Virus record (IMG/VR): IMGVR_UViG_3300028558_000791
Location: 372,001-436,000 of that record
Reading direction: 5' to 3' (one strand)
Length of the DNA stretch: 64,000 nucleotides
Under the pieces are notes generated by a model. It ran no database searches. It was given only the letters and a program-made list of their open reading frames with translations, and was not told the DNA's origin. Each line of letters begins with the position of its first letter. The stretch's first letter is position 1. Both the position numbers and the translations under genes were made by a program. Shown piece by piece: positions 1 to 46,885 of the stretch.

Positions 1-1058
1 GTATAGCTAACTAACTGTTTACCATTATCAGTTGAAACCCAAATGTTTCCGGCAGTAGGAAATCCCGTAGTAGAAGCTACTGTGATAGTACCGGCAGTCG
101 CTGTTGGCAATCTGGTCGCATTGGAGGCGGATGCAATTGTTGTTGTAGCAGTAGTTGTTGAAGCGACGTTAATAGTTGCTTGCGGCAAAGATTGACCGTT
201 AGATCCAGAAGCAATCGTAGTGGTAGTTGCAGAAACTATTGTAGAGAATCCAATGACACCTGTACCACCCGAACATCCTGTGAAAGTGGTAGCCGTTATT
301 CCGGTATAGCTAACTGTTTGCCTACCGGTACTAGTATAAACAAATAGAGTTCCGCTACTTGGAAATGGTGTAGTGGATGGGACCGTTAAGGTAGTTTGAG
401 GTAGAGTAGTTGCATTGTTAGCTACACCATTTCCAGTTCTCATAGCTCCAGTGCCACCCGTACAACCGGTGAAAGTAGTAGCCGTTTTTGCAGTATAGGT
501 TACAGTTTGCACGCCGTTATCAGTATACACTAAAATAGTTCCACTAGCGGGAAATACTGTTGTTGAGCTTACGTTAATAGTGCTTGTAGGAAGAGAAATG
601 GCATTAGAGCTAGATATGATTGTTGTATCTGGAGTAATTGATGTCCCACTTCTATAATCAATGACATAAGAATTAGTGCCAGTATCAAATCCGGTAATTA
701 GAAAACAACCTGAATTAGATTGTGGATTAGCCGTACTTCTTAGGACTAGTATTCTACCCTTATCGGTAGCAGAAACTGTTCTAGTCCCTGATGGAATAGA
801 AACGTTCAACTCGGTATTCAAACCTAGATTGATTCCGGCTCGTGAGCCGCCAGCAAAAGTTGGGGCACCAGTAGGAGTAGAGTCGGCGGTAGAGATTAGT
901 AACGTTCCAACAGAATTTATGTTGTAGTTCGTATCACCAACATAGGTATACAACAAAACTCTTCTTAAAAAGATCGTTGATAGATACGAGCCAATGAATG
1001 TAGAGGTTGTAGTATTGAAATTCTGTGTTACATAATCTCTGAGTAAATGCCTTACCAT
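1..1058 (-). CDS. Virion/tail-fibre-like protein, truncated by the window start; paralogue of 1559..3286
   Basis: Manual translation from the ATG at 1058 gives MVRHLLRDYVTQNF...YTYVGDTNY..., matching the N-terminus of 1559..3286, followed by several TTFTGCTGGTG modules. Missing from the ORF track because it runs off the edge. Confidence 0.8.
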   Translation of the reverse strand, partial: MVRHLLRDYVTQNFNTTTSTFIGSYLSTIFLRRVLLYTYVGDTNYNINSVGTLLISTADSTPTGAPTFAGGSRAGINLGLNTELNVSIPSGTRTVSATDKGRILVLRSTANPQSNSGCFLITGFDTGTNSYVIDYRSGTSITPDTTIISSSNAISLPTSTINVSSTTVFPASGTILVYTDNGVQTVTYTAKTATTFTGCTGGTGAMRTGNGVANNATTLPQTTLTVPSTTPFPSSGTLFVYTSTGRQTVSYTGITATTFTGCSGGTGVIGFSTIVSATTTTIASGSNGQSLPQATINVASTTTATTTIASASNATRLPTATAGTITVASTTGFPTAGNIWVSTDNGKQLVSY

Positions 1059-3294: not shown

Positions 3295-6200
3295 TTATAA
3301 GATGAAGAAGAGGTTTTGAGGAATAATCGTGTTATCCCAGATTATAGCAATTCCGTTTTGTACGTTAATGAATTGAGGTCCACCTGCAGTTCCAAATCTA
3401 TGAAAACCTGGTAGTGGTGTACTAGTAAATTTGATTGTTCTTAACTTAACTCTTCCAAGAGAATATTGATTAGTAACAGCAGGCAAACTTAATACACAAT
3501 CAGAAGCCAAGACGGTACCTCTAATAGTATTAAATGCTAATCTAACGTCTGTTAGCTGTGTACCAAAGTTAGGAGTTCCATCTCCAAACAAAGACTTAGA
3601 CAATGCATAGTGAGTTCTGACAGCCCCATCAGTTCCTTTCATTAAGAATCCACGTGATATGTTACCTCCAGCATTGCTGTTAGTGATAACATAAACTGAT
3701 CCGTTAAATACTCCGCCTCTATTTAACGCTACCATAGGATTAGTATCTGAAGCAGATGGATACAGTCTAGTTGGAATCTCGACATGTATATAAGAGGATC
3801 CATCGCCACTGTTTACATCTTTGAAATGCATCCAGAAGAAACCTGGATCAGCAGCCATAGTTACAGCCATGGTGGTTGCCGGAGATCCGTTGAACAAGTT
3901 GCCGCTTTGACTAGTGAATTGTCCAGTTGCATCTGTCTGTATATTGCCAGTAACTGGGAAGGCAACACCATTCCAATTTCCACCTGGTGACATATTCATT
4001 CCAATAGTGCCAGCAGAATCATTTCCAAATATCTGTACTTGACTATTAGCTTGACCAGGGTTTAAGCTAATAGAGGATGGATTGAATTGCATAACCATAT
4101 AGTTACCGTTACCAGAGCTAGCGTTTTGCGCCAAACCAACTTCAACTACTCTATAGTTAATGTTACTTCTCTGATTAAAAGATGGATGTAATGTAATAGG
4201 ATCTGGTGTGCCACCTGTGTTAATATTTATTCTTATTGTATTTGAGTTTACGACCGATGAGATGGTGTATATTCCATCTTCGCTGGTTCCTGAATTTGGC
4301 TGCCACATTACAAACAATTTGCCAACCATATTGATAGTGCTTACTGTTTGTGTTCCGCCGCTCGTCCAAGCTCCATTAGGAATAGAGTTAATGATAGTTA
4401 AGTTAGTTCTGTCATTAATAATTCCACCACTAGTATAGGTTCCGCTTGGTACCGTACTGTTAAGTGAGAAATTTCTATTATCAATTCTAGTTACTGTGAA
4501 GATACCGTTAGCTCCATTCAAACCACCAATACCAGATGTTACAGAAAATTGATTGGTTGTTAAAGTAGTGCCAGTAGTCGTTGTAACTTGAACTGGAGAA
4601 CTCATAATACTGCCGGTTGAAATGGTTCCAATACCGCCTGTACCACCTGTGAAAGTTGTTGGCGTTGTAGCTGTATAGGCTACTGTTTGGGTTCCTTGAG
4701 TAGATACTACGTTGAATGTTCCAGTGGGTGGATAACATATGACTACCGCATTACCAGTACTCATAGTTCCAGTACCGCCAGTGCATCCTGTAAATGTAGT
4801 ACCTGTAGTTCCAGTATATGTGACTACCTGGAATCCCGTGCTAGTGGTTACGTAAACATATCCGCTTGTAGGGAATCCTGTCGTGGAGGATACGTTAATA
4901 GTTGATTGTGGAAGAGACGCTCCGTTAGAACCTGCGGTAATAGAAGTATAGTTTGATGCTGGTGAAAAAGCTGTGAATACAGAGCCACCGGCCGATGTAT
5001 TGCCAGTGCCATTAGTGCATCCGGTAAGTGTAGTTGCTGTCGTACCGGTATATGAAACTGGTTGAGTTCCAGTAGTTGTTACTATGTAAACAGTACCGGT
5101 AGTTGGGAAATTAGTAAAGAATCCGTTGTTGTTGATAGTATTACCAGATTGCATTAAACCAACACCACCCAAACATCCTGTAAAGGTTGTAGATGTGACG
5201 CCGGTATAAGTAACAGTTTGCGCAACAGGTGAAGGTGGCGCTACGCTACTATTAGTTAGCATAGTTCCAGTACCACCTGTACATCCAGTAAATGAAACTC
5301 CAGTAATACCAGTATAAGCAACTGAAGTTGCAAGAGCAACAGCACCACCAGTGGACATAGTTCCAGTACCACCAGTACATCCTGTGAAAGTTGTTCCAGT
5401 AGTTCCAGTATAAGCTACAATTTGTGGTCCGTTGGCAGTTGTTACAAAGATATTTCCTGAGGTTGGGAATCCGGTTGTAGCAGCAACGTTAATCGTTCCT
5501 TGAGGTAGAGTCTGTCCGTTAGATCCAACAGCAATAGTTGTTGTAGTTGATGTTCCTACAAGCAAGTTACCAGTTGTAGGAAATCCGGCAGTAGAGCCTA
5601 CGTTAATGGTCGATTGTGGCAAAGTTAATAAGTTAGATGGAACAGTAACGCTAGTAAAAGGTGTTGCAAATACGCTGATAGTTCCCGTAGTTGGAAACCC
5701 TGTAGTTGATGTCGCGTTAACAGTAGTTTGTGGTAAAGTACTGCCGTTAGAAGCCGCGAGAATTGTAGTACTAGCTGTGGCGGTTGCAGTTACGTTGACT
5801 GTAGAAGTTGGAAGAGTCTGAATACCAGATGTCGTTGTGAATGGTGCCGCAGTGCTAGAGTTGATAGTAGTTTGTGGTAAAGATAATCCGTTAGATGGAA
5901 ATGCAATACTTGTGTTAAAAAAGTTTGCAGTGCTAACATTGTAGGTTGGTATACTAACAACTTGAGTTCCGCCTGTTGATACTCCATTAGCTGATGTATT
6001 TCCAAGAACACCATTAACCACTACTGACTGTAAATTATTATAGGAGTTAGATGAGTTCAAAGTTAGCTGTATTGTTGCGCTAACAGCTCCACCAGTCGAC
6101 ATAGTTCCAGTACCACCAGTACATCCTGTGAAAGTTGTGCCAGTGATACCAGTGTATGTGACTACTTGGTTGCCAGCGCCCGTGGTTACGTTAATAGTTC

Positions 6201-7077
6201 CGCTAGCCGGGAAAGAAATCGATACTGCTCCACCAGTAAACATGGTGCCTATACCAAAAGTACATCCAGTAAATGTTGTTGCAGTTGTTCCTGTATATAG
6301 AACTTGAACTGTTCCTTCAGTAGTAGCTATGTTAATATAGCCTGCAGATGGGAATCCTACAGTTGAAACAACGTTAATGGTGCCAGTTGGTAATGACACG
6401 TTATTTGATGAAGCGGTTATTGTAGTAGAAATTGGTGTGGTAGTAGCTACGTTAATAGTTGATTGTGGAAGGCTTTGACCGTTAGATCCTGAAGCTATTG
6501 TGGTCTGAAAGTTGGAAGCGTTCGTAACAGTAAAGCTAGTTGCGGTAGAGGTGAATGGATTGCTATTAAGTGCGGTAAATATAGCATCGCCAGTAAAAGT
6601 TGTGCTAATCTGTGCGGCTGTGTATCCATCATTTCCTACAGCTAGAACAGTGTTTCCTTCTGTGAAGTTAGTGCTCCAAGCAAATGGAGTGGTATTAACC
6701 GTACCTCCACCCGTGTAACCGCCGTTTCCAGTGGTGCTATTTAAGCTAAATGTAGAGCCTGTAATAACTGTAATTTGATAGATACCATTAGCCGCAGTAT
6801 TTCCAAGAACACCATTAATACTAACCTGTTGGCCAGTAAATAAAGCATTAGTTGTAGTTGTGGTAACTACAATTGGAGAGGTGCCAGCTCCAGTGGTATT
6901 AGAAATGGAGTAGTTGAGTGATGAGGTTGTGGACATTCCACCTGGAGTTTGAAGTGCAGAGGTACCATTGACTGCATATCCCCAAAATTCATAAAGCATT
7001 TTAAGGAACTCAGATGCGCGTCCATTTTGGTTGTAATTGTAGATCATTCCTCTACAAAATCTTAATGCTGTTGCCAT
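3295..7077 (-). CDS. Large tail-fibre-like protein with 8 nested ~65-aa repeat modules and FCCH-like modules
   Basis: 1260 aa Thr/Gly-rich; repeated SNGxxLPQxTINVxSTxGFP and VxYTGxTxTTFTGCTGGTG halves. Confidence 0.75.
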   Translation of the reverse strand: MATALRFCRGMIYNYNQNGRASEFLKMLYEFWGYAVNGTSALQTPGGMSTTSSLNYSISNTTGAGTSPIVVTTTTTNALFTGQQVSINGVLGNTAANGIYQITVITGSTFSLNSTTGNGGYTGGGTVNTTPFAWSTNFTEGNTVLAVGNDGYTAAQISTTFTGDAIFTALNSNPFTSTATSFTVTNASNFQTTIASGSNGQSLPQSTINVATTTPISTTITASSNNVSLPTGTINVVSTVGFPSAGYINIATTEGTVQVLYTGTTATTFTGCTFGIGTMFTGGAVSISFPASGTINVTTGAGNQVVTYTGITGTTFTGCTGGTGTMSTGGAVSATIQLTLNSSNSYNNLQSVVVNGVLGNTSANGVSTGGTQVVSIPTYNVSTANFFNTSIAFPSNGLSLPQTTINSSTAAPFTTTSGIQTLPTSTVNVTATATASTTILAASNGSTLPQTTVNATSTTGFPTTGTISVFATPFTSVTVPSNLLTLPQSTINVGSTAGFPTTGNLLVGTSTTTTIAVGSNGQTLPQGTINVAATTGFPTSGNIFVTTANGPQIVAYTGTTGTTFTGCTGGTGTMSTGGAVALATSVAYTGITGVSFTGCTGGTGTMLTNSSVAPPSPVAQTVTYTGVTSTTFTGCLGGVGLMQSGNTINNNGFFTNFPTTGTVYIVTTTGTQPVSYTGTTATTLTGCTNGTGNTSAGGSVFTAFSPASNYTSITAGSNGASLPQSTINVSSTTGFPTSGYVYVTTSTGFQVVTYTGTTGTTFTGCTGGTGTMSTGNAVVICYPPTGTFNVVSTQGTQTVAYTATTPTTFTGGTGGIGTISTGSIMSSPVQVTTTTGTTLTTNQFSVTSGIGGLNGANGIFTVTRIDNRNFSLNSTVPSGTYTSGGIINDRTNLTIINSIPNGAWTSGGTQTVSTINMVGKLFVMWQPNSGTSEDGIYTISSVVNSNTIRININTGGTPDPITLHPSFNQRSNINYRVVEVGLAQNASSGNGNYMVMQFNPSSISLNPGQANSQVQIFGNDSAGTIGMNMSPGGNWNGVAFPVTGNIQTDATGQFTSQSGNLFNGSPATTMAVTMAADPGFFWMHFKDVNSGDGSSYIHVEIPTRLYPSASDTNPMVALNRGGVFNGSVYVITNSNAGGNISRGFLMKGTDGAVRTHYALSKSLFGDGTPNFGTQLTDVRLAFNTIRGTVLASDCVLSLPAVTNQYSLGRVKLRTIKFTSTPLPGFHRFGTAGGPQFINVQNGIAIIWDNTIIPQNLFFIL

Positions 7078-7167: not shown

Positions 7168-8694
7168 TTATGTCGTCAAAGTAGGAATAGTTTGAATCCA
7201 GGATCCAATTACTTCAACTGTAGAATATGGTCCGCCACACGATGGTGCAGGGGCATTTGCCAAAGAAACTTGCGTATCTGTCCATACCACTGGGGTTGGA
7301 GTAGAACATCCTAAGTCAAAAGCTTGTAATTTATAAACAAATTGAACTGTCGGAGTGATTGTCTGAATGCCGTATTTATAAACATTTTGAAAATAGGAAA
7401 GCGGTCTAGCTACATTAGCTATTCTGATATCTTGAATCATATAATTAGCTTCTTCTTTGTTAGCAGATCCAGTAGCTGTAATAGCGCCAATCTTCCAAGG
7501 ACCACTTCCGTTGACTCCATCAGTATAGCTAATGGCGGCGCTAGAGGCTACTGAATTGAATTGAGTGGCGCCAGTATAGAAAATACACTGAGTTCCATTT
7601 AGGTAAGCTTTTAATGAAGTACCGTCGTAAGTCATTCCGATATGTGACCATGAAGAAAGTGGAATTGGATAGTCATCTATTTGAATAGAAATTTGAGTCG
7701 ATGTACTATTAGCGAACTGACATATCCAAGAAAGCCCGCTAGTAGTAGTTAACATAGATATATTGATAGCATAGAATGGTGCCGTCCAAGTTTGCGTGCT
7801 ATTAGTATCCCTATATTGTTTAGCTATGAGACTACCATTATTAGATGAGTTATACGATCTGACATAAACCCACGCTGAAACAGTCATTGGGAAAGCTGGC
7901 TGTATAGTATTAGCTCCCTGAGCATAATTTCTAATGGCAGAAGATCCGTTAGGAAAATTTCCAGTTCCAGGAATGAATGGACAAGAATCAAATATGCCAT
8001 TTCCATTTCTTAGAACGGTTGTTGTATTCAGTGAATAAGTTAATTTTGTTCCATTGGCTGGAATGTTAATACCATTACCAAATATAGTTGCAAAAGTTCC
8101 TGCAGAACTTTGAATGCCCGCACAACCTGTAAATCCAGAAGTGGCGGTAGAGTTTCCATAGATAACTTCAAAAGTCTGGCTATTCTCAAATAACCTTATT
8201 TCATAGTTAAGTGTACTAGTCTGGCCGAATGGCCTATTTCTAAATTCTATATTGAATATCCTGCTACCTGCTGAGCCTACAGTGGACGTAAAAATACCAA
8301 AGCCAGCAGTACTAGTATCTTCATCTCTAGTAAAACCAAAAATGGTAGCGCCAAAATCAGCACGGGGCATAGTAACGTTAAATGCTTGAGTCGCAAGTCC
8401 AAATTCTATAAATCCATTAGATGATACGTTAACAGAACTATATGTAGTGCCATAAAATGTAAAATTAAATGGCAAAGCTACTACAGTCATAGCTTCATCA
8501 GCATGATTACCAATATCAGTAGTTCCGGGATCAATAGACGCGCCAGAAGTTTGTGTTATCGAATAAGCTGTTGTAAGATTCAAATCAGTAGTAGTGCTAT
8601 TAGGAGATTGTGTGCCTGTATTTCTATAAGCTCCAGTCTGCTCATTCAATTTCCAAACTATGATGTCATTAGAATCTGGTAAAGTTCTGGCCAT
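7168..8694 (-). CDS. LamG/concanavalin-A-like lectin domain virion protein
   Basis: TVSAWVY...WSHIGMTYDGTSLKAYLNG...IQDIRIANVAR LamG pattern. Confidence 0.8.
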   Translation of the reverse strand: MARTLPDSNDIIVWKLNEQTGAYRNTGTQSPNSTTTDLNLTTAYSITQTSGASIDPGTTDIGNHADEAMTVVALPFNFTFYGTTYSSVNVSSNGFIEFGLATQAFNVTMPRADFGATIFGFTRDEDTSTAGFGIFTSTVGSAGSRIFNIEFRNRPFGQTSTLNYEIRLFENSQTFEVIYGNSTATSGFTGCAGIQSSAGTFATIFGNGINIPANGTKLTYSLNTTTVLRNGNGIFDSCPFIPGTGNFPNGSSAIRNYAQGANTIQPAFPMTVSAWVYVRSYNSSNNGSLIAKQYRDTNSTQTWTAPFYAINISMLTTTSGLSWICQFANSTSTQISIQIDDYPIPLSSWSHIGMTYDGTSLKAYLNGTQCIFYTGATQFNSVASSAAISYTDGVNGSGPWKIGAITATGSANKEEANYMIQDIRIANVARPLSYFQNVYKYGIQTITPTVQFVYKLQAFDLGCSTPTPVVWTDTQVSLANAPAPSCGGPYSTVEVIGSWIQTIPTLTT

Positions 8695-8697
8695 AAT

Positions 8698-9618
8698 TTA
8701 TCCTATCACATTCCAGGTTTCAACTACTTCTACTGGTCCATAACTACCGCCACATGGCCCAGCAGGCGCAGCATTGATAGAAATCGAAGTAGAAACCCAA
8801 TAAACGGGCGTTGGCGTACTGCAAGATAGATCATAGGCACGAAGCTTATAATAAGTTGTGAGTCCAGAACCAGTAGAGGCAGGACTTATTCCGCTGTTGT
8901 ATACGTTTTGAAAATAAGAAAGTGGTCTTACTACATTGGCTATTCTAAAATCACATAATGACATAGAACTTTCTTCTGGGTTACCAGATCCGGAAGGAAT
9001 AGCACCAAAGAACCATGGACCATGACCACTATAGTTTATTGATCCCGTTGTAGATGCAGTGCCATATAAGGTTCCATCCATATATCCATTTACAGTTGCT
9101 CCATCATAAGTCAAACCTAAATGGAACCATCTTCCTTGTGGATATTGATTGGCTGATGGAATCGATATTGTAGTGGCTCCAAAATCCATATTCAACTGTA
9201 ATGGTAAGCTTGAAGATCCTTTAGTATGAAAACTAAAAATAGCGAATGTCGGGCTACTCCAAATTCCAGCAGTGTCTTGTTTGTTAGCCATGTGCTGATC
9301 AAATCCTGTTGGATTAGTAGCTCTAAGAAAAAACCAACCAGAGAATGTAACTGGGGCTTGTGGTTCAACAGTATTGGCGCCTGAAATATAATTGCGTGTA
9401 CCGCTATTATTTCCAGTAAAGCGAACACAACTATTCAATCCACTAGCAGAGAATAAACTAGGCTGTTGTATTAAAAAGGATCCTCCAACGGTGGTTAAAT
9501 TGGCCGCAGAACCAAGAGAATTAATTGACGTAGAAGAGTTAGCGAAAACAGTTGCTGTGCTGTCATCAAACTTCCATACTACAATATCATTATTATCTGG
9601 TGTTACTCTATTACCCAT
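8698..9618 (-). CDS. LamG/concanavalin-A-like lectin domain virion protein
   Basis: TFSGWF...WFHLGLTYDGATVNGYMDG...DFRIANVVR; paralogue of its neighbours. Confidence 0.8.
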   Translation of the reverse strand: MGNRVTPDNNDIVVWKFDDSTATVFANSSTSINSLGSAANLTTVGGSFLIQQPSLFSASGLNSCVRFTGNNSGTRNYISGANTVEPQAPVTFSGWFFLRATNPTGFDQHMANKQDTAGIWSSPTFAIFSFHTKGSSSLPLQLNMDFGATTISIPSANQYPQGRWFHLGLTYDGATVNGYMDGTLYGTASTTGSINYSGHGPWFFGAIPSGSGNPEESSMSLCDFRIANVVRPLSYFQNVYNSGISPASTGSGLTTYYKLRAYDLSCSTPTPVYWVSTSISINAAPAGPCGGSYGPVEVVETWNVIG

Positions 9619-10327
9619 TTATATGAACCCCATTATAATAAATGTTAGCAAAATAACTTTGTGGGCGAGCAATGTTAGCTACCCTAATATCTTGGATAAG
9701 TGCCGGAGCACCTTGAACAGTTGCAGAACCCGGAATAGCTCCCGCATACCATTGTCCTCTATTACCTGCTGTACCATAGTCTATAGTTCCAGAGAAAGCC
9801 GAGCTAGCAACCACAGAGCCATTCATATAAGCTATAAGTGTAGCGCCATCCCAAGTACCTCCGATATGATACCATCGTCCTGGGGCTATAACATTATTTG
9901 AGCCTGAAGATACAGATTGTAATGTTCCATTAAGTGTAATGTAAAAATGCCATTGACCATCACTTGTATTATCCATTTGTATACCAAACGTTAAGAATGG
10001 TGATGACCATCCATTCAAAAAATATTGCTTATTGAATAACTCGGCAAAAAAGTTTGGACTTCTTCTAACAAATACCCATCCAGATAGAGTGAGTGTTGGA
10101 GTTACAATAACATCATTAGCTCCGCCGGCCCCATCATGATTAGGAGAAACAAAACTACCTGGTACATATAAAGCTCGTCCTACGATACCTTGTGTATTAG
10201 AAATTGGATTACCATAATCGGCCCAATTACCAACGCTGCCAAAAGTACCCGTATTAACATGTGTGCCAGGGCCATCGTCTAGGGCCCAAACAAAGACATC
10301 ATTTGAATCTGGTAAAGTTCTAGCCAT
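9611..10327 (-). CDS. LamG/concanavalin-A-like lectin domain virion protein
   Basis: TLSGWV...WYHIGGTWDGATLIAYMNG; same MARTLPDSND N-terminus as 7168..8694. Confidence 0.8.
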   Translation of the reverse strand: MARTLPDSNDVFVWALDDGPGTHVNTGTFGSVGNWADYGNPISNTQGIVGRALYVPGSFVSPNHDGAGGANDVIVTPTLTLSGWVFVRRSPNFFAELFNKQYFLNGWSSPFLTFGIQMDNTSDGQWHFYITLNGTLQSVSSGSNNVIAPGRWYHIGGTWDGATLIAYMNGSVVASSAFSGTIDYGTAGNRGQWYAGAIPGSATVQGAPALIQDIRVANIARPQSYFANIYYNGVHING

Positions 10328-11830: not shown

Positions 11831-14815
11831 ATGAGCAATTACCCTTACAGTTTAGATAACAACATCACATTACCTGGCGTTTCTGGAAGTACGCAGGAAG
11901 ATGTCGCTATTACAGCTTTGCGTAGCGCCGTTTTTGCCATTGAAACCGAGCTGGGCGTCACACCAAGTGGGATCTATCCAGACGTAAGAACTAGATTAGA
12001 TATTTTAGAAGCTAGAATCCAAAATGGTATTTCTCCAAATATTCCAAACGATGGATACGTAAAGAGTCCACTATATGTTTGGAACGTTCCGGCTAGTACA
12101 ATCCTAAGCATTAGCGATGGTTACGGCGCTCCGACTGAAAATAGATTAGATGGCTCTATCTACATGAGAGGTGGAGATGGTTACGCCAATAATCAACTTT
12201 ATGTCCGACTCAATGGGCACTGGTTCCCTGTTCAAACCGAACATTTCCAAGCGGCTAACGATTTAGCACCTTTGCTTTCAGTCTCTGGTAATAGTGACGG
12301 ACATTTATCTCAGACAGTTATTGGATTATACAACCATCCATTCAATCCAACTATGAATTCTGTGGGGGCTACTCAAGATGGTTACCATGTTACCTGGAAC
12401 AATAGCTTAGCAGAATGGGAAGCTCAAACTGGATTTATCCCAACTCACGACTTAGCGGCCTTCTCTGGACCTTATGGTAGAACGGGTCAAATAGTTACTG
12501 GTATTCAAGGTAGCCACGTGTCTCCAGTAGCACCACAAGATGGATACATGCTTGTTTGGAGTGCCGCCGATTCTGCTTGGGAGCCAAGGGTTAGGCCGTT
12601 TGTTTTCACTAACTCAGTTGTAGCAGGAGATGGTTACGTTGTAAGGACTAACATCTCTTCCAATAGAGGTTCCACACAATCTCCAAACATTTCCGCTGCC
12701 AGCAAAGTTGGTATGAATAATTTTGGAAGTCGTTCTTCAGGGGCTACTACCGGAGTCACTAATAGCTACGCTTCTATTTTGGGTGGCGATAGATTGTCAG
12801 TAAGCGGTTTGTACGGTGTTGGTGTAGGTGGAGATAGTAATATTGTCGCTGGACAGTATGCAGCCATTTTAGACGGTCTATCCAATACTGCATCAGGACA
12901 ATATAGCATTGTCCTAAATGGAACCCTTAACCTAGCCAGCAATACACAGTCTACTGTAATTAATGGTACATCTAACACTGCTTCAGGAGTAAACTCCACA
13001 GTTGAAAATGGTACTAATAATACTGCTGCTGCCAATTTCTCTACAATTCTAAATGGAGCAACTAACAGCATCTCCTCTGGATCCTTACACTCTGCAATAG
13101 GTTTTGGTTCAGGTCATCAGATTATCGGTGGTGGCTCTTCAATTTACTCTGTTTTGTTAGGCGGTGTTTCAAACACTATCTCCAGTGCACAAAATGTGTT
13201 GGTAGGTACACCAACTAGCTCAACTACAGCGGGTCATTACTCAGTTCTATTATCTGGTACTAATAATACCATCACTACATTATCTGACTTTGCAGTAATT
13301 TTATCAGGAGCCACAAACACAATCAACAACTCTTCTGAGTTTGGATTTATTGGTACCGGTCAGAACAATGCAGTTACTGGACACTTTGCAACCATTTTAA
13401 GCTCTGATCATTCAACAGCTAATGGACAGAGTGCCATGGTATTGAATGGATTTACCAACTCTGCAACTGGACAGTACTCTACTATCCTCAATGGCCAGAA
13501 TAACACTGTCAATAATAGTGGCTGGGGTCTAATTCTAGACGGTTATAGTAATTCTGTAACTGGCACTGGCTCGTTCATTGCTGACGGTTACAACAATAGT
13601 ATTTCTGGGTTCTTCTCTTCTATTATTAATGGTAATCTAAACACCATTGCCGGTAGAAACAGTACAATCCTAAACGGTTCCAATAATAGCGTGGACGTTA
13701 ATAGCCCTGAAAGTACCATTTTAGTTGGTAATAACAACGTTTATACAAACTCTAATAGCGGACTTGTAGTTGGTAACGGAAACATATTAACCAACGCTTC
13801 TCAACAATTCATACTTGGAATAAACAATAATACGCAATCAGCTCAGTCTTTCATCAATGGAGGATTTAATACATTAGCAAGCGGAGCTTCTTTTAATAGA
13901 ATTTTTGGCTCGAATAATAGTTTAGGATCTGGTGCTGCCACCAACTTTATCCATGGAAGTGGTAACAATCTTGGCCCAACTTTAACTACTGCTAATGCAA
14001 CAGTTCTTGGTTCTAGTAACATCATTGATGGTGTATCAAGTGGTTATATTAATGGATCACAAAATATCACTACATCTAGTTTAACTAATATTCATGGTCA
14101 ATTTGGTAGGGCTAGAATGTTTGGTCAAGAGGTAAGGGCCAACTCTAGATTTACTGCCACCACAATTGCTGTCGGATCTAATGGAATCTCTCTACCAACA
14201 GGAACCATTAACGTAGCTTCTACTACGGGATTCCCAACTAGTGGAACTATTGCCATCGTAACTAACGCTGGATTACAGACTGTTGCTTATACCAGCACTA
14301 ATGCTACACAGTTCTTAACTTGCACTGGTGGTACGGGCACTCTTGTTACAGGTGCAGCGGTTGGTAAGATTGGTGAAGCTCAATGGTCACGTCTTATCCT
14401 AACAGGATCTTCAACTGGTGGTTCAGCTATTCCGCTACAACTACAAGATACGGTAGCAACTAATCCAACATTTGTAGACGGATATTCCTACGATATGAGC
14501 ATCAAGCTACTCATCGTTAATACTTCTCCAATCTCACCTAATCCAGTTGTTCCAGCCAGACACTATATTGATGTTCTAGCTCATCAAGAGAGCGGCGTCT
14601 TAATTATCGACAACATCAACTTTACAGTATCTACGCCTAACACATCTGATAGCTCAACTAGAACTCCTTGGACAGTAACTGTTACGGCAGTTGGTAATCA
14701 ATTGGTATTGCAGGTAGACGTTGAAGCAATTACTTCTTACGTACAACCAAGCAACGGACCTTCTAACAGAAGAGCAATCGCCACAATCGATATGCGAGAA
14801 ATTTCGAGAATATAA
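11831..14815 (+). CDS. Putative tail fibre with an Asn/Ser-rich beta-solenoid (YadA-head-like repeats)
   Basis: 994 aa; ~15-aa repeats NTASGxxSxILNG; one TxFxTCTGGTG module near the C-terminus. Confidence 0.7.
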   Translation: MSNYPYSLDNNITLPGVSGSTQEDVAITALRSAVFAIETELGVTPSGIYPDVRTRLDILEARIQNGISPNIPNDGYVKSPLYVWNVPASTILSISDGYGAPTENRLDGSIYMRGGDGYANNQLYVRLNGHWFPVQTEHFQAANDLAPLLSVSGNSDGHLSQTVIGLYNHPFNPTMNSVGATQDGYHVTWNNSLAEWEAQTGFIPTHDLAAFSGPYGRTGQIVTGIQGSHVSPVAPQDGYMLVWSAADSAWEPRVRPFVFTNSVVAGDGYVVRTNISSNRGSTQSPNISAASKVGMNNFGSRSSGATTGVTNSYASILGGDRLSVSGLYGVGVGGDSNIVAGQYAAILDGLSNTASGQYSIVLNGTLNLASNTQSTVINGTSNTASGVNSTVENGTNNTAAANFSTILNGATNSISSGSLHSAIGFGSGHQIIGGGSSIYSVLLGGVSNTISSAQNVLVGTPTSSTTAGHYSVLLSGTNNTITTLSDFAVILSGATNTINNSSEFGFIGTGQNNAVTGHFATILSSDHSTANGQSAMVLNGFTNSATGQYSTILNGQNNTVNNSGWGLILDGYSNSVTGTGSFIADGYNNSISGFFSSIINGNLNTIAGRNSTILNGSNNSVDVNSPESTILVGNNNVYTNSNSGLVVGNGNILTNASQQFILGINNNTQSAQSFINGGFNTLASGASFNRIFGSNNSLGSGAATNFIHGSGNNLGPTLTTANATVLGSSNIIDGVSSGYINGSQNITTSSLTNIHGQFGRARMFGQEVRANSRFTATTIAVGSNGISLPTGTINVASTTGFPTSGTIAIVTNAGLQTVAYTSTNATQFLTCTGGTGTLVTGAAVGKIGEAQWSRLILTGSSTGGSAIPLQLQDTVATNPTFVDGYSYDMSIKLLIVNTSPISPNPVVPARHYIDVLAHQESGVLIIDNINFTVSTPNTSDSSTRTPWTVTVTAVGNQLVLQVDVEAITSYVQPSNGPSNRRAIATIDMREISRI

Positions 14816-15312: not shown

Positions 15313-18300
15313 ATGGCAATACAGTACTATATGCGAGCATTTAATACGACCCTAGTCAGGTATGTTGACTGGGTTGTAAATGATACGCCCGACAGTACAG
15401 GAGTTTTTTCTGGTTTCCCAACCAATCAACTCATCAACATTACTGTAAACAGAATTGTACAGTCTAAAGTATCGAACTTTCTGAAGCCAAATCAGTCTTT
15501 AGGCGGCACAGATGGTGAGTTTTTCCATGTTAATAGTTATGACTGGAGAAATGCTGTCACACCTATTTCACCTCCAACCACTCTAACTGGATTTGCCGTT
15601 GAAAGAGGAGTTTCTGCTGTATCATCTATTACCAGTGCCTCTAATACTTCTCCAATCAACGTTATCTCTGCTACTAACCATGGTTTAGTAACTGGCCAAA
15701 TTGTAACTATTAATGGTGTCACTGGTAACGTAGCCGCCAATGGATCCTGGCCAATCAATGTAACTGGTCTAACCACATTCACCTTACTTGGTTCTTCTGG
15801 TAGTGGAACGTATGTTTCTGGTGGAAACATTTTCTTACCAAACGATTTTTCTACACTCACTTGGGATGAAACCAATGCAGTGTGGAGATTTATGCTTAAC
15901 ACGAATGGCGATGGTACCACAATTGGTAATAGCCAGTCTGTAAAGGTAAACAATTTCTTTATCGATGGTTACCTAGCTCTAGGAAGCCCTCCACTCCCAA
16001 CTCATGGCATTATCAGATTGCCAAATAACCAGTTTATCTTTGGAGAAAATGCTCAAGGAACTGGTGACATTCAACTTATTGGATCTGATGCTCTCAATAG
16101 AATTAGACTTGGTTCTTTAACTACGGACATTGTTTATACGCCAGGAATCATTGATGTAGATGGATACATTCAACATGATGGTAATGGCTCTAATGTTGCT
16201 TCTACTGGATTTATTCGCGAACAAAACAACACAGCCATCGTTGGTTTCAAAAATGTAAACACAACTTTTGCCGATGTTACCGCCTTATCTTCTAACTCTT
16301 TTAACCAAGTAGTTATTGGAGATAGCGTTAATACTGGTACAGTTCATAATACATCAACTTCTACATTTAGTATTACGGCTGTTACGGCAACTAACCCAGT
16401 TCAAATAACTGTATCTGCTCCAACTACGTTTGTTACCGGACAGAACGTTAGCATTGCTGGTATTACTGGAACTATTGGAACCGATGCTACTAATGGTCTG
16501 AATGGTAAATCATTCGGAATCTCAGTTATTGATACGACTCACTTTACGTTAACCGGGTCTTTAGGTTCAGGATTGGTTTATACTAGTGGTGGTACAGTTA
16601 CAACTAATAATGTCCACGCTTTTCAAGAGGGCGGAGTTACACAAGTTGAAATTGGTACATCTGTCATTAGATTTCCAGCCGGTGTAAGTGCGCCTTTCCT
16701 AACACAAACTACAGCAACTGGTAGCAATAGCGGACAGAACTTAACTATTCAGTCTCAGAACTCTGGATTGGGAGGAACCAACGGTGGTAACCTAACCCTT
16801 ACCACTGGTACTGGTGCAACTAACGGTATATTGAATCTCGTAATTGGTGGTACTACTAGAGTAACGTTGAATGATACAACTGAAACGCACACTCATCCAA
16901 CTATCACGTTTGCTAATACAGTAGTCAGTCCAACTATTACGCAGAACACTACTTCTAGTGCGCCAACTAACCTTACTGTTTCTGCCCAACCAACTTCACA
17001 AGCAGCCACACTTGGAGGTTCCCTTAACCTAAGTTCTGGTACAGGAACTTCAGCGGCTGGTAACGTCAACGTTCAAACGGGTGGCACGAACCAAATTATC
17101 GTTTCTCCAAACTTCATTACTCCAGGAACTACTTCCTCAACGGGTGGTAGCGTAGTTATTAGAGGCAGCTTAGAAGTCGTTGGTACAACTACAACCGTAG
17201 ATAGCACCGTAGTTGATATCATTGGTAGAATCATCCATGCTAACTGGGCAGATCCAACTGGCTCCCCTAACGTAGCAGTTCCATCTCAGGTCGTTGGATA
17301 CAGCGTACACCGTGGAAACGCATCTGGTGTTCCTCGTGATGGTGGCGCTCTAATTTGGACTGAAGGCTCTCTAAACTCAGGTGCCGACGGATTCTGGAGA
17401 CATGTCACTTATCCTGGTGATGGTATCGGTACCGACAACTTCACTATTGCTAACTCTCTAAATGCTGTTGGCTCAATGGCTAGCAACTTCTCTTCTAGCA
17501 CGGATCCAAACCCAATCTCTGGATACTTGGCAGCCAGTGGTAGTTTAAGGACTGCTAACAACGTCTCAACTGTTGTTTCCAGAAACTTAACTCTAACTAC
17601 AACCGTTTCGGCAACATCTAACTTACAGACACTCCCACAAGGAACTATCAACGTAGCATCCACCGCCGGATTCACAGCGGCTGGAACCTTACTCATTCTA
17701 TCTAGCACTGGTGTACAGACTGTCACCTATACAGGTACAACTGGCACGACCTTCACTGGCGCCGTTGGTGGTACTGGTACAATAATTACAGGAAGCATTG
17801 TTGGTCAGACTAATCAATCAACTACGATTGCAGCCGGCTCTAACAACATAGCACTTCCAACAGGTACTATCAACGTTGCTTCTACAGTTGGATTCCCGGC
17901 TTCCGGAACTCTACGCCTTGTCAGTCGTACTAGCGCATCAGCCACGGCACCTCCAAGCATTCAAGTAATTACATATACTGGAACTGGTGCAACTACCTTT
18001 ACCGGTTGTACAGGTGGCACAGGAACTATGTTTACTGGAGATGCCGTTACAAGCCCTCCAAGCCCAGGAACTCAAGACTTAGTTCTATTGGGAACTGACT
18101 TTGGTAACCGTATCCTACATGGTGCTCCAGCCAACAACACTGGCCACATCTTCAATACAACTACTGGTAGCATCTATGACTTCCAGATCAACAGCGTATC
18201 TCAGGTTCAGCTAAGAGGTGATGCAGATACTGATACGTTTACTAAAACTATCACTATTGCTCCAACTGTTTCTACTCCTAAGTTGTATCAAGTAGTTCGT

Positions 18301-19653
18301 CCAGACACCGGAGCTAACAATGGATTCAATCTTGGAGTATTTGCTCAGGCTGGTCAGCAGCAAACTGGTGGCAACAATAATAACAATGGCGGAAACGTCG
18401 TCATCGGTTCTGGTGCTGCTGGTACTGGTGGTGGTGGTACAGCAGGTATCAACGGAAGCGTTGATCTCCAAACTGGAGCAACGCTCAAAGTAAGAATCTT
18501 CCCAACTACAGCAGTATCTGCTACTGATAATAACAGCATTATCTACTTTGAGAATTTGTTCAGAGTTGATACTGCACAGACTGCACCACTCTTTAGACAA
18601 GACAGCAATGTTACTAACGGAGCAACAGCCCAGAACTATACTGTCCAGGCACAGAATGCAACTGGTACAACCAGCACAGGTGGAGATATCATCAACACCT
18701 CTGGTACTGGTACAACAACTGCCGGTAACAACAGACTACAAACAGGTGGCGTAGATAAGATTATCGTTCATCCATCCTTTACTGAGTTTAGAGATACAGC
18801 AGAAGCTTATCGTATTACTCCAGTATCTGCCGGTACAACTACTTTGCAAGCAGCTAGCACAGTTACAGCGCTTGTTTACAAGCAAGCTGACTTAACTACT
18901 AACGCTGGAACTGGTGCAACTACAACTCTACAAGCACAAAATGAGACTGGCACAACGTCTACAGGTGGTTTGCTAGTTCTTACTTCAGGAACTGGAACGA
19001 CCACTGCTGGTAACGTCACTCTACAAACTGGTGCGGTTGATAGGGTAATTGTTCACCCAACCTTTACTGAATTTAGAGATACCTCTGAAGCTTATCGTAT
19101 CACTCCGCTATCCGCTGGAGCCACGACCCTTCAGGCTATTTCTACCGCCACTTCTGTTACATACAAACAAGGCGATTTGGCCACTGCTTCCGGTACTGGC
19201 GCAACTACAACCGTTCAAGCACAGAACGAAACTGGTACCACTTCAACTGGCGGTGCGTTAAACCTAACTTCTGGTACGGGTACAACTACTAATGGAGCTT
19301 TGAACCTACAAGCTGGTGGCGTAACGACAGCGTCTGTGGTAACTAACAAGTTTGTATTTAATAAGGGTAGTCGCAGAAATGTTACGCAAGTAACAAATAC
19401 ATATGCAGTACTTACTACTGATGACTTTATCGCAGTAACTACTTTATCTGCTCCATTTACCATCACTCTTCCAACGGGAGCGGCAACTGGTGATAGCTAT
19501 ACTATCAAAGATGCAACTGGAAATGCCGTAACAAACACCCTTACAATTGATGGAAATGGTAACAACATTGATGGCTCTCCTACATTTATAATGACGCAAG
19601 CATATGCGGCAGCCACCTTTACTTTCCTTAATAGTCAATGGAGCGTAAGCTAA
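15313..19653 (+). CDS. Large tail-fibre-like protein
   Basis: 1446 aa; FCCH-like modules, two TTFTG modules, QAQNxTGTTSTGGxxxLTSGTGT repeats. Confidence 0.75.
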   Translation: MAIQYYMRAFNTTLVRYVDWVVNDTPDSTGVFSGFPTNQLINITVNRIVQSKVSNFLKPNQSLGGTDGEFFHVNSYDWRNAVTPISPPTTLTGFAVERGVSAVSSITSASNTSPINVISATNHGLVTGQIVTINGVTGNVAANGSWPINVTGLTTFTLLGSSGSGTYVSGGNIFLPNDFSTLTWDETNAVWRFMLNTNGDGTTIGNSQSVKVNNFFIDGYLALGSPPLPTHGIIRLPNNQFIFGENAQGTGDIQLIGSDALNRIRLGSLTTDIVYTPGIIDVDGYIQHDGNGSNVASTGFIREQNNTAIVGFKNVNTTFADVTALSSNSFNQVVIGDSVNTGTVHNTSTSTFSITAVTATNPVQITVSAPTTFVTGQNVSIAGITGTIGTDATNGLNGKSFGISVIDTTHFTLTGSLGSGLVYTSGGTVTTNNVHAFQEGGVTQVEIGTSVIRFPAGVSAPFLTQTTATGSNSGQNLTIQSQNSGLGGTNGGNLTLTTGTGATNGILNLVIGGTTRVTLNDTTETHTHPTITFANTVVSPTITQNTTSSAPTNLTVSAQPTSQAATLGGSLNLSSGTGTSAAGNVNVQTGGTNQIIVSPNFITPGTTSSTGGSVVIRGSLEVVGTTTTVDSTVVDIIGRIIHANWADPTGSPNVAVPSQVVGYSVHRGNASGVPRDGGALIWTEGSLNSGADGFWRHVTYPGDGIGTDNFTIANSLNAVGSMASNFSSSTDPNPISGYLAASGSLRTANNVSTVVSRNLTLTTTVSATSNLQTLPQGTINVASTAGFTAAGTLLILSSTGVQTVTYTGTTGTTFTGAVGGTGTIITGSIVGQTNQSTTIAAGSNNIALPTGTINVASTVGFPASGTLRLVSRTSASATAPPSIQVITYTGTGATTFTGCTGGTGTMFTGDAVTSPPSPGTQDLVLLGTDFGNRILHGAPANNTGHIFNTTTGSIYDFQINSVSQVQLRGDADTDTFTKTITIAPTVSTPKLYQVVRPDTGANNGFNLGVFAQAGQQQTGGNNNNNGGNVVIGSGAAGTGGGGTAGINGSVDLQTGATLKVRIFPTTAVSATDNNSIIYFENLFRVDTAQTAPLFRQDSNVTNGATAQNYTVQAQNATGTTSTGGDIINTSGTGTTTAGNNRLQTGGVDKIIVHPSFTEFRDTAEAYRITPVSAGTTTLQAASTVTALVYKQADLTTNAGTGATTTLQAQNETGTTSTGGLLVLTSGTGTTTAGNVTLQTGAVDRVIVHPTFTEFRDTSEAYRITPLSAGATTLQAISTATSVTYKQGDLATASGTGATTTVQAQNETGTTSTGGALNLTSGTGTTTNGALNLQAGGVTTASVVTNKFVFNKGSRRNVTQVTNTYAVLTTDDFIAVTTLSAPFTITLPTGAATGDSYTIKDATGNAVTNTLTIDGNGNNIDGSPTFIMTQAYAAATFTFLNSQWSVS

Positions 19654-23497: not shown

Positions 23498-23704
23498 TCA
23501 TTTTTTACCAAAAAAGTATCGATAATCTGCGTATGAGAAGTATCCAAATCCAGCAAGCAATGCGCCAAAGGTGACTGACAAGATTGCTGGTTTACCGGTT
23601 GCGATTGACCAGACTATACCACCAATTAGTGCTATGTTAGTAAGCGCGGTGGCAGATGCAGTAACAACCTTAATAGTTTTAGCGACATCCATATTAAACC
23701 TCAT
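23498..23704 (-). CDS. Small two-TM membrane protein
   Basis: Two hydrophobic segments; overlaps the stop of the upstream gene. Confidence 0.6.
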   Translation of the reverse strand: MRFNMDVAKTIKVVTASATALTNIALIGGIVWSIATGKPAILSVTFGALLAGFGYFSYADYRYFFGKK

Positions 23705-24744
23705 TTAATGATTACATCATGCGGATGAGATTCCTTCAGACCCGCATTAGTGATTCTAATAAATACCGGATTATCCTTAAGTTCTTCTAGATTATGGGCT
23801 CCTTGATAGGAACATCCAGAAGTCAAGCCCTCTAAAAGCTTAGTTAATACGGACATATAGCTCCCTTTGGTTGGAACTAGGGCGGCCACACCCTCGATAT
23901 GGTTAGTCTTATGAGTTGAACTGCCTACATATTCTTTGTAGACGACCTTATCAATCTCAACTCTTCTGCCCGGAGTTTCCTCGCAGCCAGCAAAGAGATT
24001 ACCTGCCATTACCATATCTGCAAAGCATAGCGCTTTGATAACATCTCCGCTATTCTTAACACCGCCATCTGCAATGAAGGGAAATTTCCTTCTCTTTTCA
24101 ATGGGGTATGTTCGAGTGCGTTCTAATTCGTTCAATTGTCTTTGGACTTCAGCTACATCCATTAGGGCGGTTAGCTGAGGAACTCCATTACCAGTTTCAA
24201 TTCTAGTAGTACAGAGGCTACCTGGTCCGACACCTACCTTAACAACATCAGTCCCGGCTGTCCATAATCTACGAGCACCTTCTCCAGTAGCTACGTTGCC
24301 AGCAATGACAAACATGTCTGGATACTTACTTTTGATCCAAGCAATCATATCGGTGCACATGTTAGAGTCGCCATGAGCTACATCTATACAGATGTTACGG
24401 ATTCCGGCATCTCGGAATCTACTAACCATCTCTCTATCTGATGGTTTGACACCAACAGACATAGCTAGATGTTCATTACCATGATCATCAAAAAGCTTGT
24501 TAGCTGTTAAGAGCTGCTCTTTTTCATCCATGAAACGATGAAGAATGGCTAGTCCACCACTCTTAATGATCTTGACGGCCATCTCTTCACCAGTAACAGT
24601 TTTCATGTTAGCTGGGATAATGGGGTGAGCGAAGTGGAGCCCTCCCCATCTTACAGAAATGTCTACGTCTTTGGATCGACTTGTGATATCAGAATGTTGG
24701 GGAACTAGAAGCACATCATCAAAAGTTAAGCCTTCACGAATCAT
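23701..24744 (-). CDS. guaB: IMP dehydrogenase / GMP reductase family protein lacking CBS domains
   Basis: [47 protein letters not shown]. Confidence 0.85.
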
Positions 24745-45851: not shown

Positions 45852-45874
45852 GATAACACCTAAAATAAGGTTAC

Positions 45875-46777: not shown

Positions 46778-46885
46778 GAAACCCCGACGAGGTTCAGTAG
46801 GCTACCGTACTTGGCAACCCAAGATTACAAAGATACAAGAATACATACCAAACCGTTACTCAAATGTTTCTTATACATTGTATAA

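Follow-up and report, generated by a model that had tools for sequence, protein, structure and literature searches.

Recursive insertion of small β-barrel domains predicted in a protein of a huge tailed phage

Introduction

How does one uninterrupted reading frame come to hold eight copies of a small domain whose halves do not lie side by side? A gene of the window (the whole 64,000-nucleotide stretch of DNA analysed) raises this question: it occupies 3295..7077 on the minus strand, stop codon included, and encodes a 1,260-residue protein, P0001, open across all 1,260 codons. An earlier note, made from sequence alone, had read the repeats as domains inserted into one another's loops and inferred recursive insertion, not tandem duplication. 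Here we report that this inference is supported by four lines of evidence and that recursive domain insertion is the likely origin of the P0001 decoration (probability about 0.8), as shown in silico only. Recursive self-insertion has so far been documented mainly for cyanobacterial RpoC2, and the architecture is otherwise rare; a survey of 2.7 million domains is reported to single out RpoC2 as extreme, with six levels.

Results

The genome, of roughly 480 kb, is that of a huge tailed phage from soil and rhizosphere metagenomes. We assign it to a tailed phage and not a giant virus because a search for an NCLDV capsid found none and because release factor, sheath-like and terminase-like matches are present, the latter two elsewhere in the phage genome and below cut-off. 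When the high-GC end of the window was read with different stop-codon assignments, no convincing sign of coding emerged, and no alternative code was adopted anywhere. The P0001 gene belongs to a cluster of module/FCCH genes and ConA-like lectin genes, its neighbours being three ConA-like lectin (Laminin_G_3) genes, additional FCCH/module genes and an ORF of 172 aa whose PHROG match to a baseplate wedge is weak (E 0.0094), and the synteny of the cluster is kept on an NCBI metagenome contig. The P0001 gene was not found in any RNA run. A paralogue cut by the window edge (3..1058, minus strand; 774 aa in the genome) has the order F F N24 F C26, a one-level nest of which the module HMM recovers F F N24 and the start of the inner copy within the window; the earlier note's claim that this truncated gene is also nested held.

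We built a module HMM of 69 positions from contiguous copies and ran it on P0001 (all P0001 features given below are on the minus strand). The search identified eight module copies, three contiguous and five split, in agreement with the earlier claim of eight copies not in simple tandem; the module measures 69 residues. The span that had been singled out, 4600..6510, corresponds to residues 190–826 and is exactly both nests. In nest 1, an M1 N-piece (residues 192–215, HMM positions 1–24; 6433..6504) is followed by the contiguous module M2 (218–286; 6220..6426), inserted in M1 after profile position ~23, and by the M1 C-piece (287–333, HMM 23–69; 6079..6219). Nest 2 opens with two short N-pieces matched at 389–434, namely those of M3 (389–412; 5842..5913) and M4 (413–434; 5776..5841), and continues with the N-pieces of M5 (437–471, HMM 1–35; 5665..5769) and M6 (475–511, HMM 1–37; 5545..5655) to the innermost contiguous module, M7 (513–581; 5335..5541). 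The C-pieces then follow in series: M6 (585–613, HMM 41–69; 5239..5325), M5 (619–648, HMM 39–68; 5134..5223) and M4 (654–700, HMM 22–68; 4978..5118), after which a second insert in M3, the contiguous module M8 (711–779; 4741..4947), precedes the M3 C-piece (781–826, HMM 24–69; 4600..4737).

The eight N-parts and eight C-parts occur in the order N N C C / N N N N N C C C C / N C C, a balanced bracket word that includes the five successive N-halves (N3–N7) previously noticed. A random order of eight N- and eight C-parts is balanced in about 11% of cases (1430/12870), and the weight of the argument therefore rests on break points, orthologue balance and folding tests. Break points complement each other only when the pieces are paired last-in-first-out, with the profile coordinates of partner pieces summing to one module without overlap, and linkers between pieces measure 1–6 residues. 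Module hosts are interrupted after profile position ~23 (the β2–β3 loop) or ~36 (the β3–β4 hairpin), with a third insertion site near position ~50 seen in a paralogue. Similarity between N- and C-halves under nested pairing is a weak test (r 0.46, with 2502/40320 permutations, or 6%, as high) that favours the M1/M2 assignment (swap: 0.08) and cannot separate the pairing of M5 and M6. Related proteins carry this widespread, unannotated phage decoration module in plain tandem as well.

Both nests lie within barrels of a second family. The E1_FCCH domain (PF16190) is identified in P0001 by a profile score above the curated cut-off and by a six-stranded closed barrel that superposes on Uba1/UBA6. 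FCCH-1 is contiguous (residues 57–129, leading strand YSISN; 6691..6909) and is supported by a Pfam match of 39.1 bits against a cut-off of 29.5 over residues 68–128, a full-length match to our own FCCH HMM, and a phmmer match to UBA6 that begins at residue 57. FCCH-A is split by the FCCH HMM into positions 3–34 (335–366) and 41–61 (889–909), which flank FCCH-B with nest 2; its middle part, including the next strand, spans residues 335–376 (5950..6075) and its closing part residues 889–913 (4339..4413). Its leading strand is inferred, on motif alone, to be residues 181–189 (SFTVTNASN; 6511..6537), parted from the rest of FCCH-A by nest 1; in other proteins the same motif immediately precedes contiguous FCCH copies, and the segment forms strand E2-8 in the model. 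FCCH-B consists of a strand at about 375–386 ahead of nest 2 (leading strand assigned to 377–386, TYNVSTAN, from the E1 FCCH alignment and the motif; 5920..5949) and a main part behind it (826–889; 4411..4602). In structural alignment, the 80 contiguous residues of the Uba1/UBA6 FCCH domains match 75–76 model residues spread across 196..711 (Z 10–10.9, rmsd 1.6–2.0, 22–29% identity; Foldseek probability 1.00). FCCH hosts are interrupted in the loop after the leading strand and in the hairpin after the 'ITVI' strand, and carry inserts of 142 aa, 438 aa (nest 2) and, within the FCCH-A hairpin, 522 aa in total. The earlier claim that the nest interrupts an FCCH-like module itself interrupting another is thus upheld by the alignment and the HMM split, with the addition that nest 1 in FCCH-A occupies the same site, the first loop, as nest 2 in FCCH-B. 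No sequence relation between the two barrel families was detectable by hhalign of their profiles (probability 0.2%).

These assignments give eleven small six-stranded barrels, three E1-FCCH-like and eight of the 69-residue module, of which seven are discontinuous with another barrel inserted in a loop. The model predicts the hierarchy FCCH-A[M1[M2], FCCH-B[M3[M4[M5[M6[M7]]], M8]]], or seven levels along the host chain FCCH-A > FCCH-B > M3 > M4 > M5 > M6 > M7, with a branched topology because M3 and FCCH-A host two inserts each. Recursive insertion within one family requires that a domain be split by a same-family copy in a loop and that inserted domains themselves act as hosts over three or more levels, and both features are met in silico: M3 > M4 > M5 > M6 > M7 on the basis of piece order and break points, and the FCCH-A > FCCH-B levels from the FCCH profile, structural alignment and motif. 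The remaining sequence forms a core in three pieces (residues 1–56, 6910..7077; 130–180, 6538..6690; and a C-terminal domain, 914–1260, 3298..4338). Relatives of ~520 aa and a 662-aa paralogue retain the same three core pieces, the N-terminal one included, and carry a module or FCCH at other places. Searches of the PDB (phmmer), Atlas features and NCBIfam left the fold of the C-terminal domain unidentified.

Structure prediction yielded discontinuous barrels and not independently folding half-modules. In an AF2 model of residues 186–340, covering nest 1 (pLDDT 92.9, pTM 0.78), the inner copy and the split outer copy have six strands each, and across the AF2 models, including one of 746 residues (180–925; pLDDT 83, pTM 0.69), the six strands of a contiguous copy recur in every split one. 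With VIA-align, contiguous barrels of 69–84 residues superpose on 68–76 residues spread across positions 1..152 of the nest 1 model, and the inner copy (model 30..103) likewise matches contiguous small barrels. The best matches of the module fold are EF-Tu-domain-2-like, ATPase N-terminal and FCCH-like barrels and phage decoration barrels; Foldseek of either AF2 model against the PDB gave no match at E ≤ 0.001.

We also folded the four N-pieces (386–512) and the C-pieces (585–830) of nest 2 as separate chains alongside three controls. The median ipSAE was 0.83 (runs 0.85, 0.45 and 0.83) compared to 0.00 for the best of the three controls, with about 557 contacts, at least 84% of contacts in agreement between runs, and partner pLDDT of at least 71. 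Of 80 solved complexes 58 reach the tool's mark, as do 2 of 110 mismatched pairs; these counts are only a rough guide here because our own alignments were used. The lowest-error pairs, 684–427, 623–466, 700–415 and 632–453, join N4 to C4 and N5 to C5: the M4 N-piece contacts 683/684 through 427/429 and residue 700 through 415, so that the first strand of M4 touches its last, and residues 466–470 of M5 contact 620–624. Direct best contacts are shown for these two pairs, and the interface lists are consistent with N3–C3 and N6–C6; M8 is nearly absent from the interface. Complementary HMM coordinates, AF2, VIA-align and this split-chain test all uphold the earlier reading that C-halves close in series around copies held in loops. 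The discontinuity is read from profile coordinates, contact lists and the ranges aligned, and is model-based with no experimental structure; structure predictors have common training data, and our alignments were fed to them.

Comparison of nesting depth among orthologues revealed 3, 4 or 5 module levels, differing even between close relatives, and all 25 are balanced. An automatic nesting grammar was passed by 14 of 25 orthologues, the other 11 failing solely on one weak short piece. Five topologies occur, protein length follows module number, and the same skeleton is found in 24 orthologues from separate assemblies (62–81% identity). Nest 1 measures 155 aa without indels in 23 of 24 orthologues, the 24th (P0022) being a fragment that starts inside nest 1, and its N-F-C unit was found in 27 more proteins. 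Close relatives (82–85% identity) differ by an in-register indel of 39 aa plus 32 aa, for which a two-gap alignment scores 333 compared to 296 for the best single gap. On the core tree, at least nine topology changes are needed (minimum possible 4, shuffled mean 13.8); this tree is possibly confounded by recombination between core and decoration.

Three rival explanations were weighed. The one that survives best, although we consider it unlikely, accepts nesting in sequence and holds that barrels swap strands with their neighbours, as in some Si3 domains, such that hosts and guests are not clean. Linkers of so few residues and the less confident complex run (0.45) are compatible with swapping. 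Against it, split copies retain the complete six-strand pattern of contiguous copies, the lowest-error contacts link pieces of the same module with first and last strands included, and the profile coordinates of partner pieces make one module without overlap. Strand exchange between adjacent barrels, reported for Si3, is not excluded.

A second alternative, which the evidence renders very improbable, denies nesting altogether and treats the half-module runs as independent short repeats forming a continuous β-structure such as an NHL-like propeller, a solenoid or a fibre shaft. In its favour, the PDB entries matched by the module profile are six-bladed propellers of the designed 'Pizza' type and the PknD NHL sensor (full-sequence E 1e-8 to 1e-3), the sequence has low complexity with an abundance of Thr, Ser and Gly, and filtered tblastn against phage records was empty. 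However, single Pizza blade matches are insignificant (about 10.6 bits, i-Evalue about 3), the total arises from six identical designed blades, and the Pizza/NHL matches are confined to profile positions 3–42. AF2 predicts barrels in place of blades (pLDDT 93; matches to barrels at Z 5–8), and a non-nested reading is at odds with the complementary break points and the passed split-chain test. We accordingly rejected the Pizza/NHL blades, the sole matches of the PDB profile search, as a compositional or short-motif resemblance; with a per-blade i-Evalue of about 3 and a predicted barrel fold, NHL or β-propeller membership is not met.

A metagenomic assembly artefact of collapsed or shuffled repeats is all but excluded: Logan unitigs break within the gene near 5383 and 6109–6127, short cross-matches between repeats appear as 'joints' and in neither run does one short-read contig cover the gene from end to end, but overlapping pieces from the probable source sample tile it without any difference, contigs from another rhizosphere sample likewise show 0 differences over most of its length (3473–4545, 4837–5232 and 5473–7077 listed), each of the 30 depth bins is covered, DNA identity between module copies is merely 50–86% over 69–84 nt, separate assemblies give the same orthologue skeleton, and the frame stays open.

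Discussion

Recursive insertion remains our preferred reading, and the closest known parallel is Si3 of cyanobacterial RpoC2 (RNA polymerase β′), a six-level recursive insertion with nodes hosting two inserts (PMC13114784; PMC10895346; PMC11515920) and insert domains of the sandwich-barrel hybrid motif (HABAS). As in Si3, small β-rich domains of one family are inserted in each other's loops, several domains are discontinuous, and the body is elongated and branched. Si3 is also the top neighbour of the 746-residue model in Foldseek, although a weak one (8emb, 9dvs_F; probability at most 0.09, TM 0.07). In contrast to Si3, the P0001 barrels are EF-Tu-domain-2-like, ATPase N-terminal and FCCH-like and not hybrid motifs, P0001 would be a structural protein of a phage, whereas Si3 lies in an essential enzyme's trigger loop, two barrel families (FCCH and module) are interleaved over seven levels from FCCH-A, and depth varies among close orthologues, a feature not reported for Si3 in the literature searched. 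Membership of the Si3/HABAS family (CATH 2.40.50.100) is not met, since fold and context both differ.

Phage decoration barrels offer a second comparison. FCCH domains form an outward-facing decoration of siphovirus tail tubes (PMC13576161), and three P0001 barrels are FCCH-like; unlike the simple terminal fusion described there, two of the three P0001 copies host very large inserts and one sits within another. A single module superposes on decoration barrels of phage tail tubes (9n71), tail tips (8vjh, 8iyk), Klebsiella phage depolymerases (7w1c, 7vul) and the P22 I-domain at Z 6–8 and rmsd 2.0–2.6 over 65–74 residues, with sequence identity of 6–16% and no profile match. Values of Z 6–8 may mean a common arrangement only. 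Self-nesting is absent from the titles and annotations of these entries. Neighbours in BFVD and the Atlas are all Caudoviricetes proteins, among them a baseplate wedge initiator, baseplate J-like proteins and proteins of Atu_ph07 and phage G. For a short relative, the Atlas look-alikes are hypothetical proteins of viruses, with a lead (0.87) to the C-terminal domain of the crAss muzzle.

The labels 'tail-fibre-like' and 'adhesin' in the earlier note have no family match behind them: searches of Pfam, PHROGs and NCBIfam with P0001 returned no tail-fibre, tailspike or baseplate family, with FCCH the only match and nothing from PHROGs or NCBIfam. The lack of any tblastn match in 50,697 phage records is uninformative, given that the low-complexity filter was on and near records were possibly excluded. 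A role as a tail or baseplate adhesin, location in the virion and surface binding are inferred from context and fold resemblance, with no virion or binding data.

In the mechanism we propose, P0001 would be a virion structural protein in which the conserved core bears the barrel tree. The chain would run outward via N-pieces to the innermost M7 and back via C-pieces, therefore crossing each domain boundary twice, and both ends of the entire decoration would come back to the core. The tree may be a projection, stiff and branched, that reaches outward from a tail or baseplate protein which binds polymers of the host surface. We further infer that evolution tunes the depth of the nest because the run of N-pieces (repeating every ~39 aa) and that of C-pieces (every ~32 aa) would behave as two tandem arrays that grow or shrink in register, only copy-number-matched variants surviving. 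The basis for this two-array mechanism is a difference of 37 score units in an alignment of repetitive sequence.

A bolder reading is possible, in which P0001 holds the deepest nest yet described (seven levels from FCCH-A, or conceivably eight if the core is one fold hosting FCCH-A in a loop) and is a length-tunable device whose coupled N- and C-piece arrays may be obliged to match in copy number. Through slippage or unequal exchange, a stiff two-stranded stalk would then gain or lose a barrel at its tip.

P0001 would represent a second, independent case of recursive self-insertion, with different folds, in a virus, and with many natural variants one level apart. The 69-residue module will be missed or mis-parsed by domain annotators that take domains to be contiguous. 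The variants make testable the origin of the nest, the co-variation of two half-domain arrays, folding when five barrels cannot close before the innermost is made, and the mechanical benefit of a two-stranded barrel stack over beads on a string. If the bolder reading is true, huge phages could adjust the reach of a receptor-binding projection over short evolutionary timescales.

Five of the eight module copies in P0001 are split into complementary pieces

The ORF at window 3295..7077 (−) encodes P0001, a putative structural protein of 1,260 residues with eight N-motifs of the LPQxTIN type and eight C-motifs of the YTGxTxxxFTGC type. The motif string reads N N C C, N N N N N C C C C, N C C, so the earlier note's claim of eight module copies that are not in tandem held; its interval 4600..6510 corresponds to P0001 residues 190-826. 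We built a 69-position module profile from contiguous copies, ran it against P0001, and recovered three full-length copies (residues 218-286, 513-581 and 711-779), with all remaining matches partial and complementary in profile coordinates. The profile search divides copy M1 into an N-piece at 192-215 (profile 1-24) and a C-piece at 287-333 (profile 23-69), M6 into 475-511 (1-37) and 585-613 (41-69), and M5 into 437-471 (1-35) and 619-648 (39-68). Copies M4 and M3 have short N-pieces within 389-434 that end near profile position 23, and their C-pieces lie at 654-700 (profile 22-68) and 781-826 (profile 24-69). Whole modules are recovered from these pieces only when the copies close last-in-first-out, and the breaks fall at two points in the module, after profile position ~23 and after ~36.

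The FTGC motif supplies one near-invariant cysteine per module, retained by at least 90% of a diverse set of 31 copies (for example P0001 residues 275, 322, 570, 602, 638, 690 and 768), and M3 has a glycine in its place.

Predicted structures support discontinuous barrels and interrupted FCCH layers

All structural statements on the P0001 nests rest on predictions. An AF2 model of residues 186-340, covering nest 1 in which M2 sits inside M1, reached pLDDT 92.9 and pTM 0.78 with a 51-row alignment, and shows an inner copy of six strands and an outer copy also of six strands, two before the insert and four after. In a structural search of all against representatives, the inner copy (model 30..103) matched small closed barrels with Z 5-8, including phage tail-tube, tail-tip and Klebsiella phage depolymerase domains, EF-Tu domain 2 and ATPase N-terminal barrels. 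Several contiguous barrels of 69-84 residues (9cop_E, 7f6d_B, 24qj_A and 9io5_A) aligned over 68-76 residues spread across model range 1..152, the pattern expected from a discontinuous outer barrel. We judged discontinuity from these aligned residue ranges and not from model coordinates, and strand exchange between adjacent barrels remains possible.

A second barrel family surrounds the modules. Pfam E1_FCCH matches P0001 residues 68-128 with 39.1 bits, above the 29.5-bit cut-off, and a profile of phage FCCH copies finds full-length matches at 66-129 and 826-889 together with a split copy, FCCH-A, whose profile positions 3-34 lie at 335-366 and positions 41-61 at 889-909, so that FCCH-A is broken by 522 residues. 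Relatedness between the module and FCCH profiles was not detectable. In an AF2 model of residues 180-925 (pLDDT 83, pTM 0.69, 25 orthologues in the alignment), the 80 contiguous residues of the Uba1/UBA6 FCCH align with 75-76 residues, the first at model 196 and the last at 711 (Z 10-10.9, rmsd 1.6-2.0). The contiguous part of FCCH-B comprises only 65 residues (model 647-711), so about ten further residues must be supplied by the strand at model 196-206 (protein 375-386), ahead of nest 2, the M3-M8 group. Contiguous FCCH copies in P0001 and other proteins always have a strand motif directly ahead of them (SYSISN, AFTVTNATN, SLTVTAASN); this motif is absent from FCCH copies located after a nest. 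It has a close counterpart just ahead of nest 1 (SFTVTNASN, 181-189) and a less exact one just ahead of nest 2 (TYNVSTAN, 378-385). The leading strand of FCCH-A is assigned by motif alone.

Together, the alignment range and motif positions place each nest in the first loop of its FCCH host, and FCCH-B plus its nest inside a hairpin of FCCH-A. The profile split, structural alignment and motif therefore uphold the further claim that the nest interrupts an FCCH-like module that itself interrupts another. With X[Y] denoting Y inside X, the likely hierarchy is FCCH-A[ M1[M2], FCCH-B[ M3[ M4[M5[M6[M7]]], M8 ] ] ], and P0001 as a whole is likely to comprise eleven barrels, seven of them discontinuous, in seven levels, a reading that rests on predicted models.

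Separated halves of the deep nest are predicted to pair in nested order

We modeled residues 386-512, which hold four successive N-pieces, and residues 585-830, which hold their C-pieces and M8, as separate chains alongside controls. The three ipSAE values were 0.85, 0.45 and 0.83 (median 0.83), compared with 0.00 for the best of three controls, with ~557 contacts predicted, at least 84% contact agreement between runs and partner pLDDT of at least 71. In benchmarking, 58 out of 80 complexes of solved structure passed the ipSAE mark, as did 2 out of 110 mismatched pairs, counts that apply only roughly here because our own alignments were used. The lowest-error contacts, in protein numbering, are 684-427, 683-427/429, 700-415, 620-624 with 466-470, 632-453 and 648-469; these join the N-piece of M4 to its C-piece and the N-piece of M5 to the second C-only piece, a predicted pairing that is nested and not crossed. 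Contact 700-415 sets the last strand of M4 against its first, the exact arrangement that insertion of a domain into a loop requires. M8 (chain-1 residues 127-195) is nearly missing from the interface, as expected of an independent insert. The result expresses model confidence and is not a measurement.

Nesting depth varies among relatives around a conserved core

A word search identified 434 module-bearing proteins, 24 of them full-length orthologues with 48-81% identity to P0001 over the best local alignment. Many relatives carry plain tandem modules, and at least 27 share the one-level unit found in P0001, a split copy around a full copy. Among orthologues nest 1 is invariant in length and nest 2 occurs in five topologies, with a main branch of depth 5, 4 or 3 and a second branch consisting of a single module or of a nest one level deep; protein size tracks module number (about 1103, 1190, 1260 and 1335 aa). 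An automatic nesting grammar passed 14 of 25 proteins outright, and the other 11 failed only through one missed short divergent piece. On a tree of the C-terminal core, the topologies require at least 9 changes (minimum possible 4, shuffled mean 13.8), a count that recombination between core and decoration may have inflated. Close pairs (82-85% identity) one level apart are distinguished by two in-register indels: one is 39 aa long and equals a period of the N-run, the other is 32 aa long and equals a period of the C-run. Allowing two gaps gives an alignment score of 333 (63/89 identical) versus 296 (56/89) for the best single 71-aa gap. These indels suggest, without proving, that the N-run and C-run act as tandem arrays that change separately and are held at matching numbers by selection.

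Proteins of ~510-537 aa have P0001 residues 1-50, 136-178 and 914-1258 in common, and two of them carry a single module at the position of FCCH-1, the contiguous FCCH of P0001. Five of these short relatives (P0126, P0127, P0128, P0134 and P0140, about 500-525 aa) have an FCCH within the C-terminal domain, between the equivalents of P0001 ~1043 and ~1071, indicating that the core accepts an inserted barrel at yet another position. Elsewhere in the P0001 genome, a 662-aa paralogue (G000:C1:368756-370741 (−), outside the window) has the same three core pieces and a one-level nest, N51 F C47, whose module is split near profile position ~50, a third insertion site unused in P0001. The same core with differently placed barrels marks the decorations as accessories at varying points of a conserved core. 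Database searches gave no identification of the core fold.

Genomic context

The window comes from an IMG/VR record of 480,838 bp, and the contigs that carry related genes are 490-498 kb long. Two genes, at window 34809-35903 (+) and 23701-24744 (−), encode a class-1 peptide chain release factor (PCRF and RF-1 domains, E 3e-44 and 5e-33) and a GMP reductase/IMPDH-family protein (E 3e-91). Translation and nucleotide-metabolism genes of these kinds are typical of huge phages. Sheath-like and terminase-like matches in the genome are weak, and no NCLDV capsid match was found in it. Structural neighbors in viral libraries are exclusively proteins of tailed phages, and several of them bear baseplate or structural-protein names. 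Six of the seven module-bearing ORFs in the genome cluster around the P0001 gene, and the gene order there is kept on an NCBI metagenome contig. DNA of the P0001 gene is found in rhizosphere metagenomes, and pieces from a second sample cover most of its length without any difference.

Immediately upstream of the P0001 gene, at 7168-10327 (−), lies a row of three genes (508, 306 and 238 aa), each encoding a ConA-like lectin/glucanase domain (Laminin_G_3, E 1e-9 to 4e-13), an arrangement kept on NCBI metagenome contig L011. On the strand opposite to P0001, large genes at 11831-14815 (+) (994 aa) and 15313-19653 (+) (1446 aa) encode one or two contiguous modules, the former with a weak beta-roll (antifreeze-like) match and the latter with an FCCH domain too. 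Three peptidase-like genes at 45153-47527 (−), resembling a metallopeptidase (weakly), a trypsin-like serine peptidase (E 7e-18) and a C39 cysteine peptidase (E 1e-9), lie just ahead of a jump in GC content (window ~47600-64000; genome record ~419600-480838) from about 41% to 52-60% and then near 50% to the record end. This high-GC region has no tRNA, no Rfam family and, when read in the standard code, no ORF above 235 aa; its sole Pfam match is a sub-threshold Prim-Pol at 60951-61556. IMG/VR labels the record a provirus, yet every related contig measures 490-498 kb; the region may be host flank, the product of a chimeric join or phage DNA.

Comparison with Si3 and implications

In cyanobacterial RpoC2, the Si3 insertion is a domain family recursively inserted into itself, with eight or nine hybrid-motif domains, four made from distant segments; it is described as nested six levels deep and as the most extreme example among 2.7 million surveyed domains (PMC10895346, PMC11515920, PMC13114784). 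That survey does not mention phages, and text searches of the literature found no phage example of such recursive insertion. P0001 and Si3 have the principle of recursive insertion in common but differ in fold, protein and context, and P0001 goes beyond Si3 in that its barrels belong to two interleaved families, insertions occupy at least five sites and depth varies naturally. From genomic context and fold neighbors we infer that the P0001 decoration would form an outward, stiff and branched projection of a tail or baseplate protein, with a putative role in binding.
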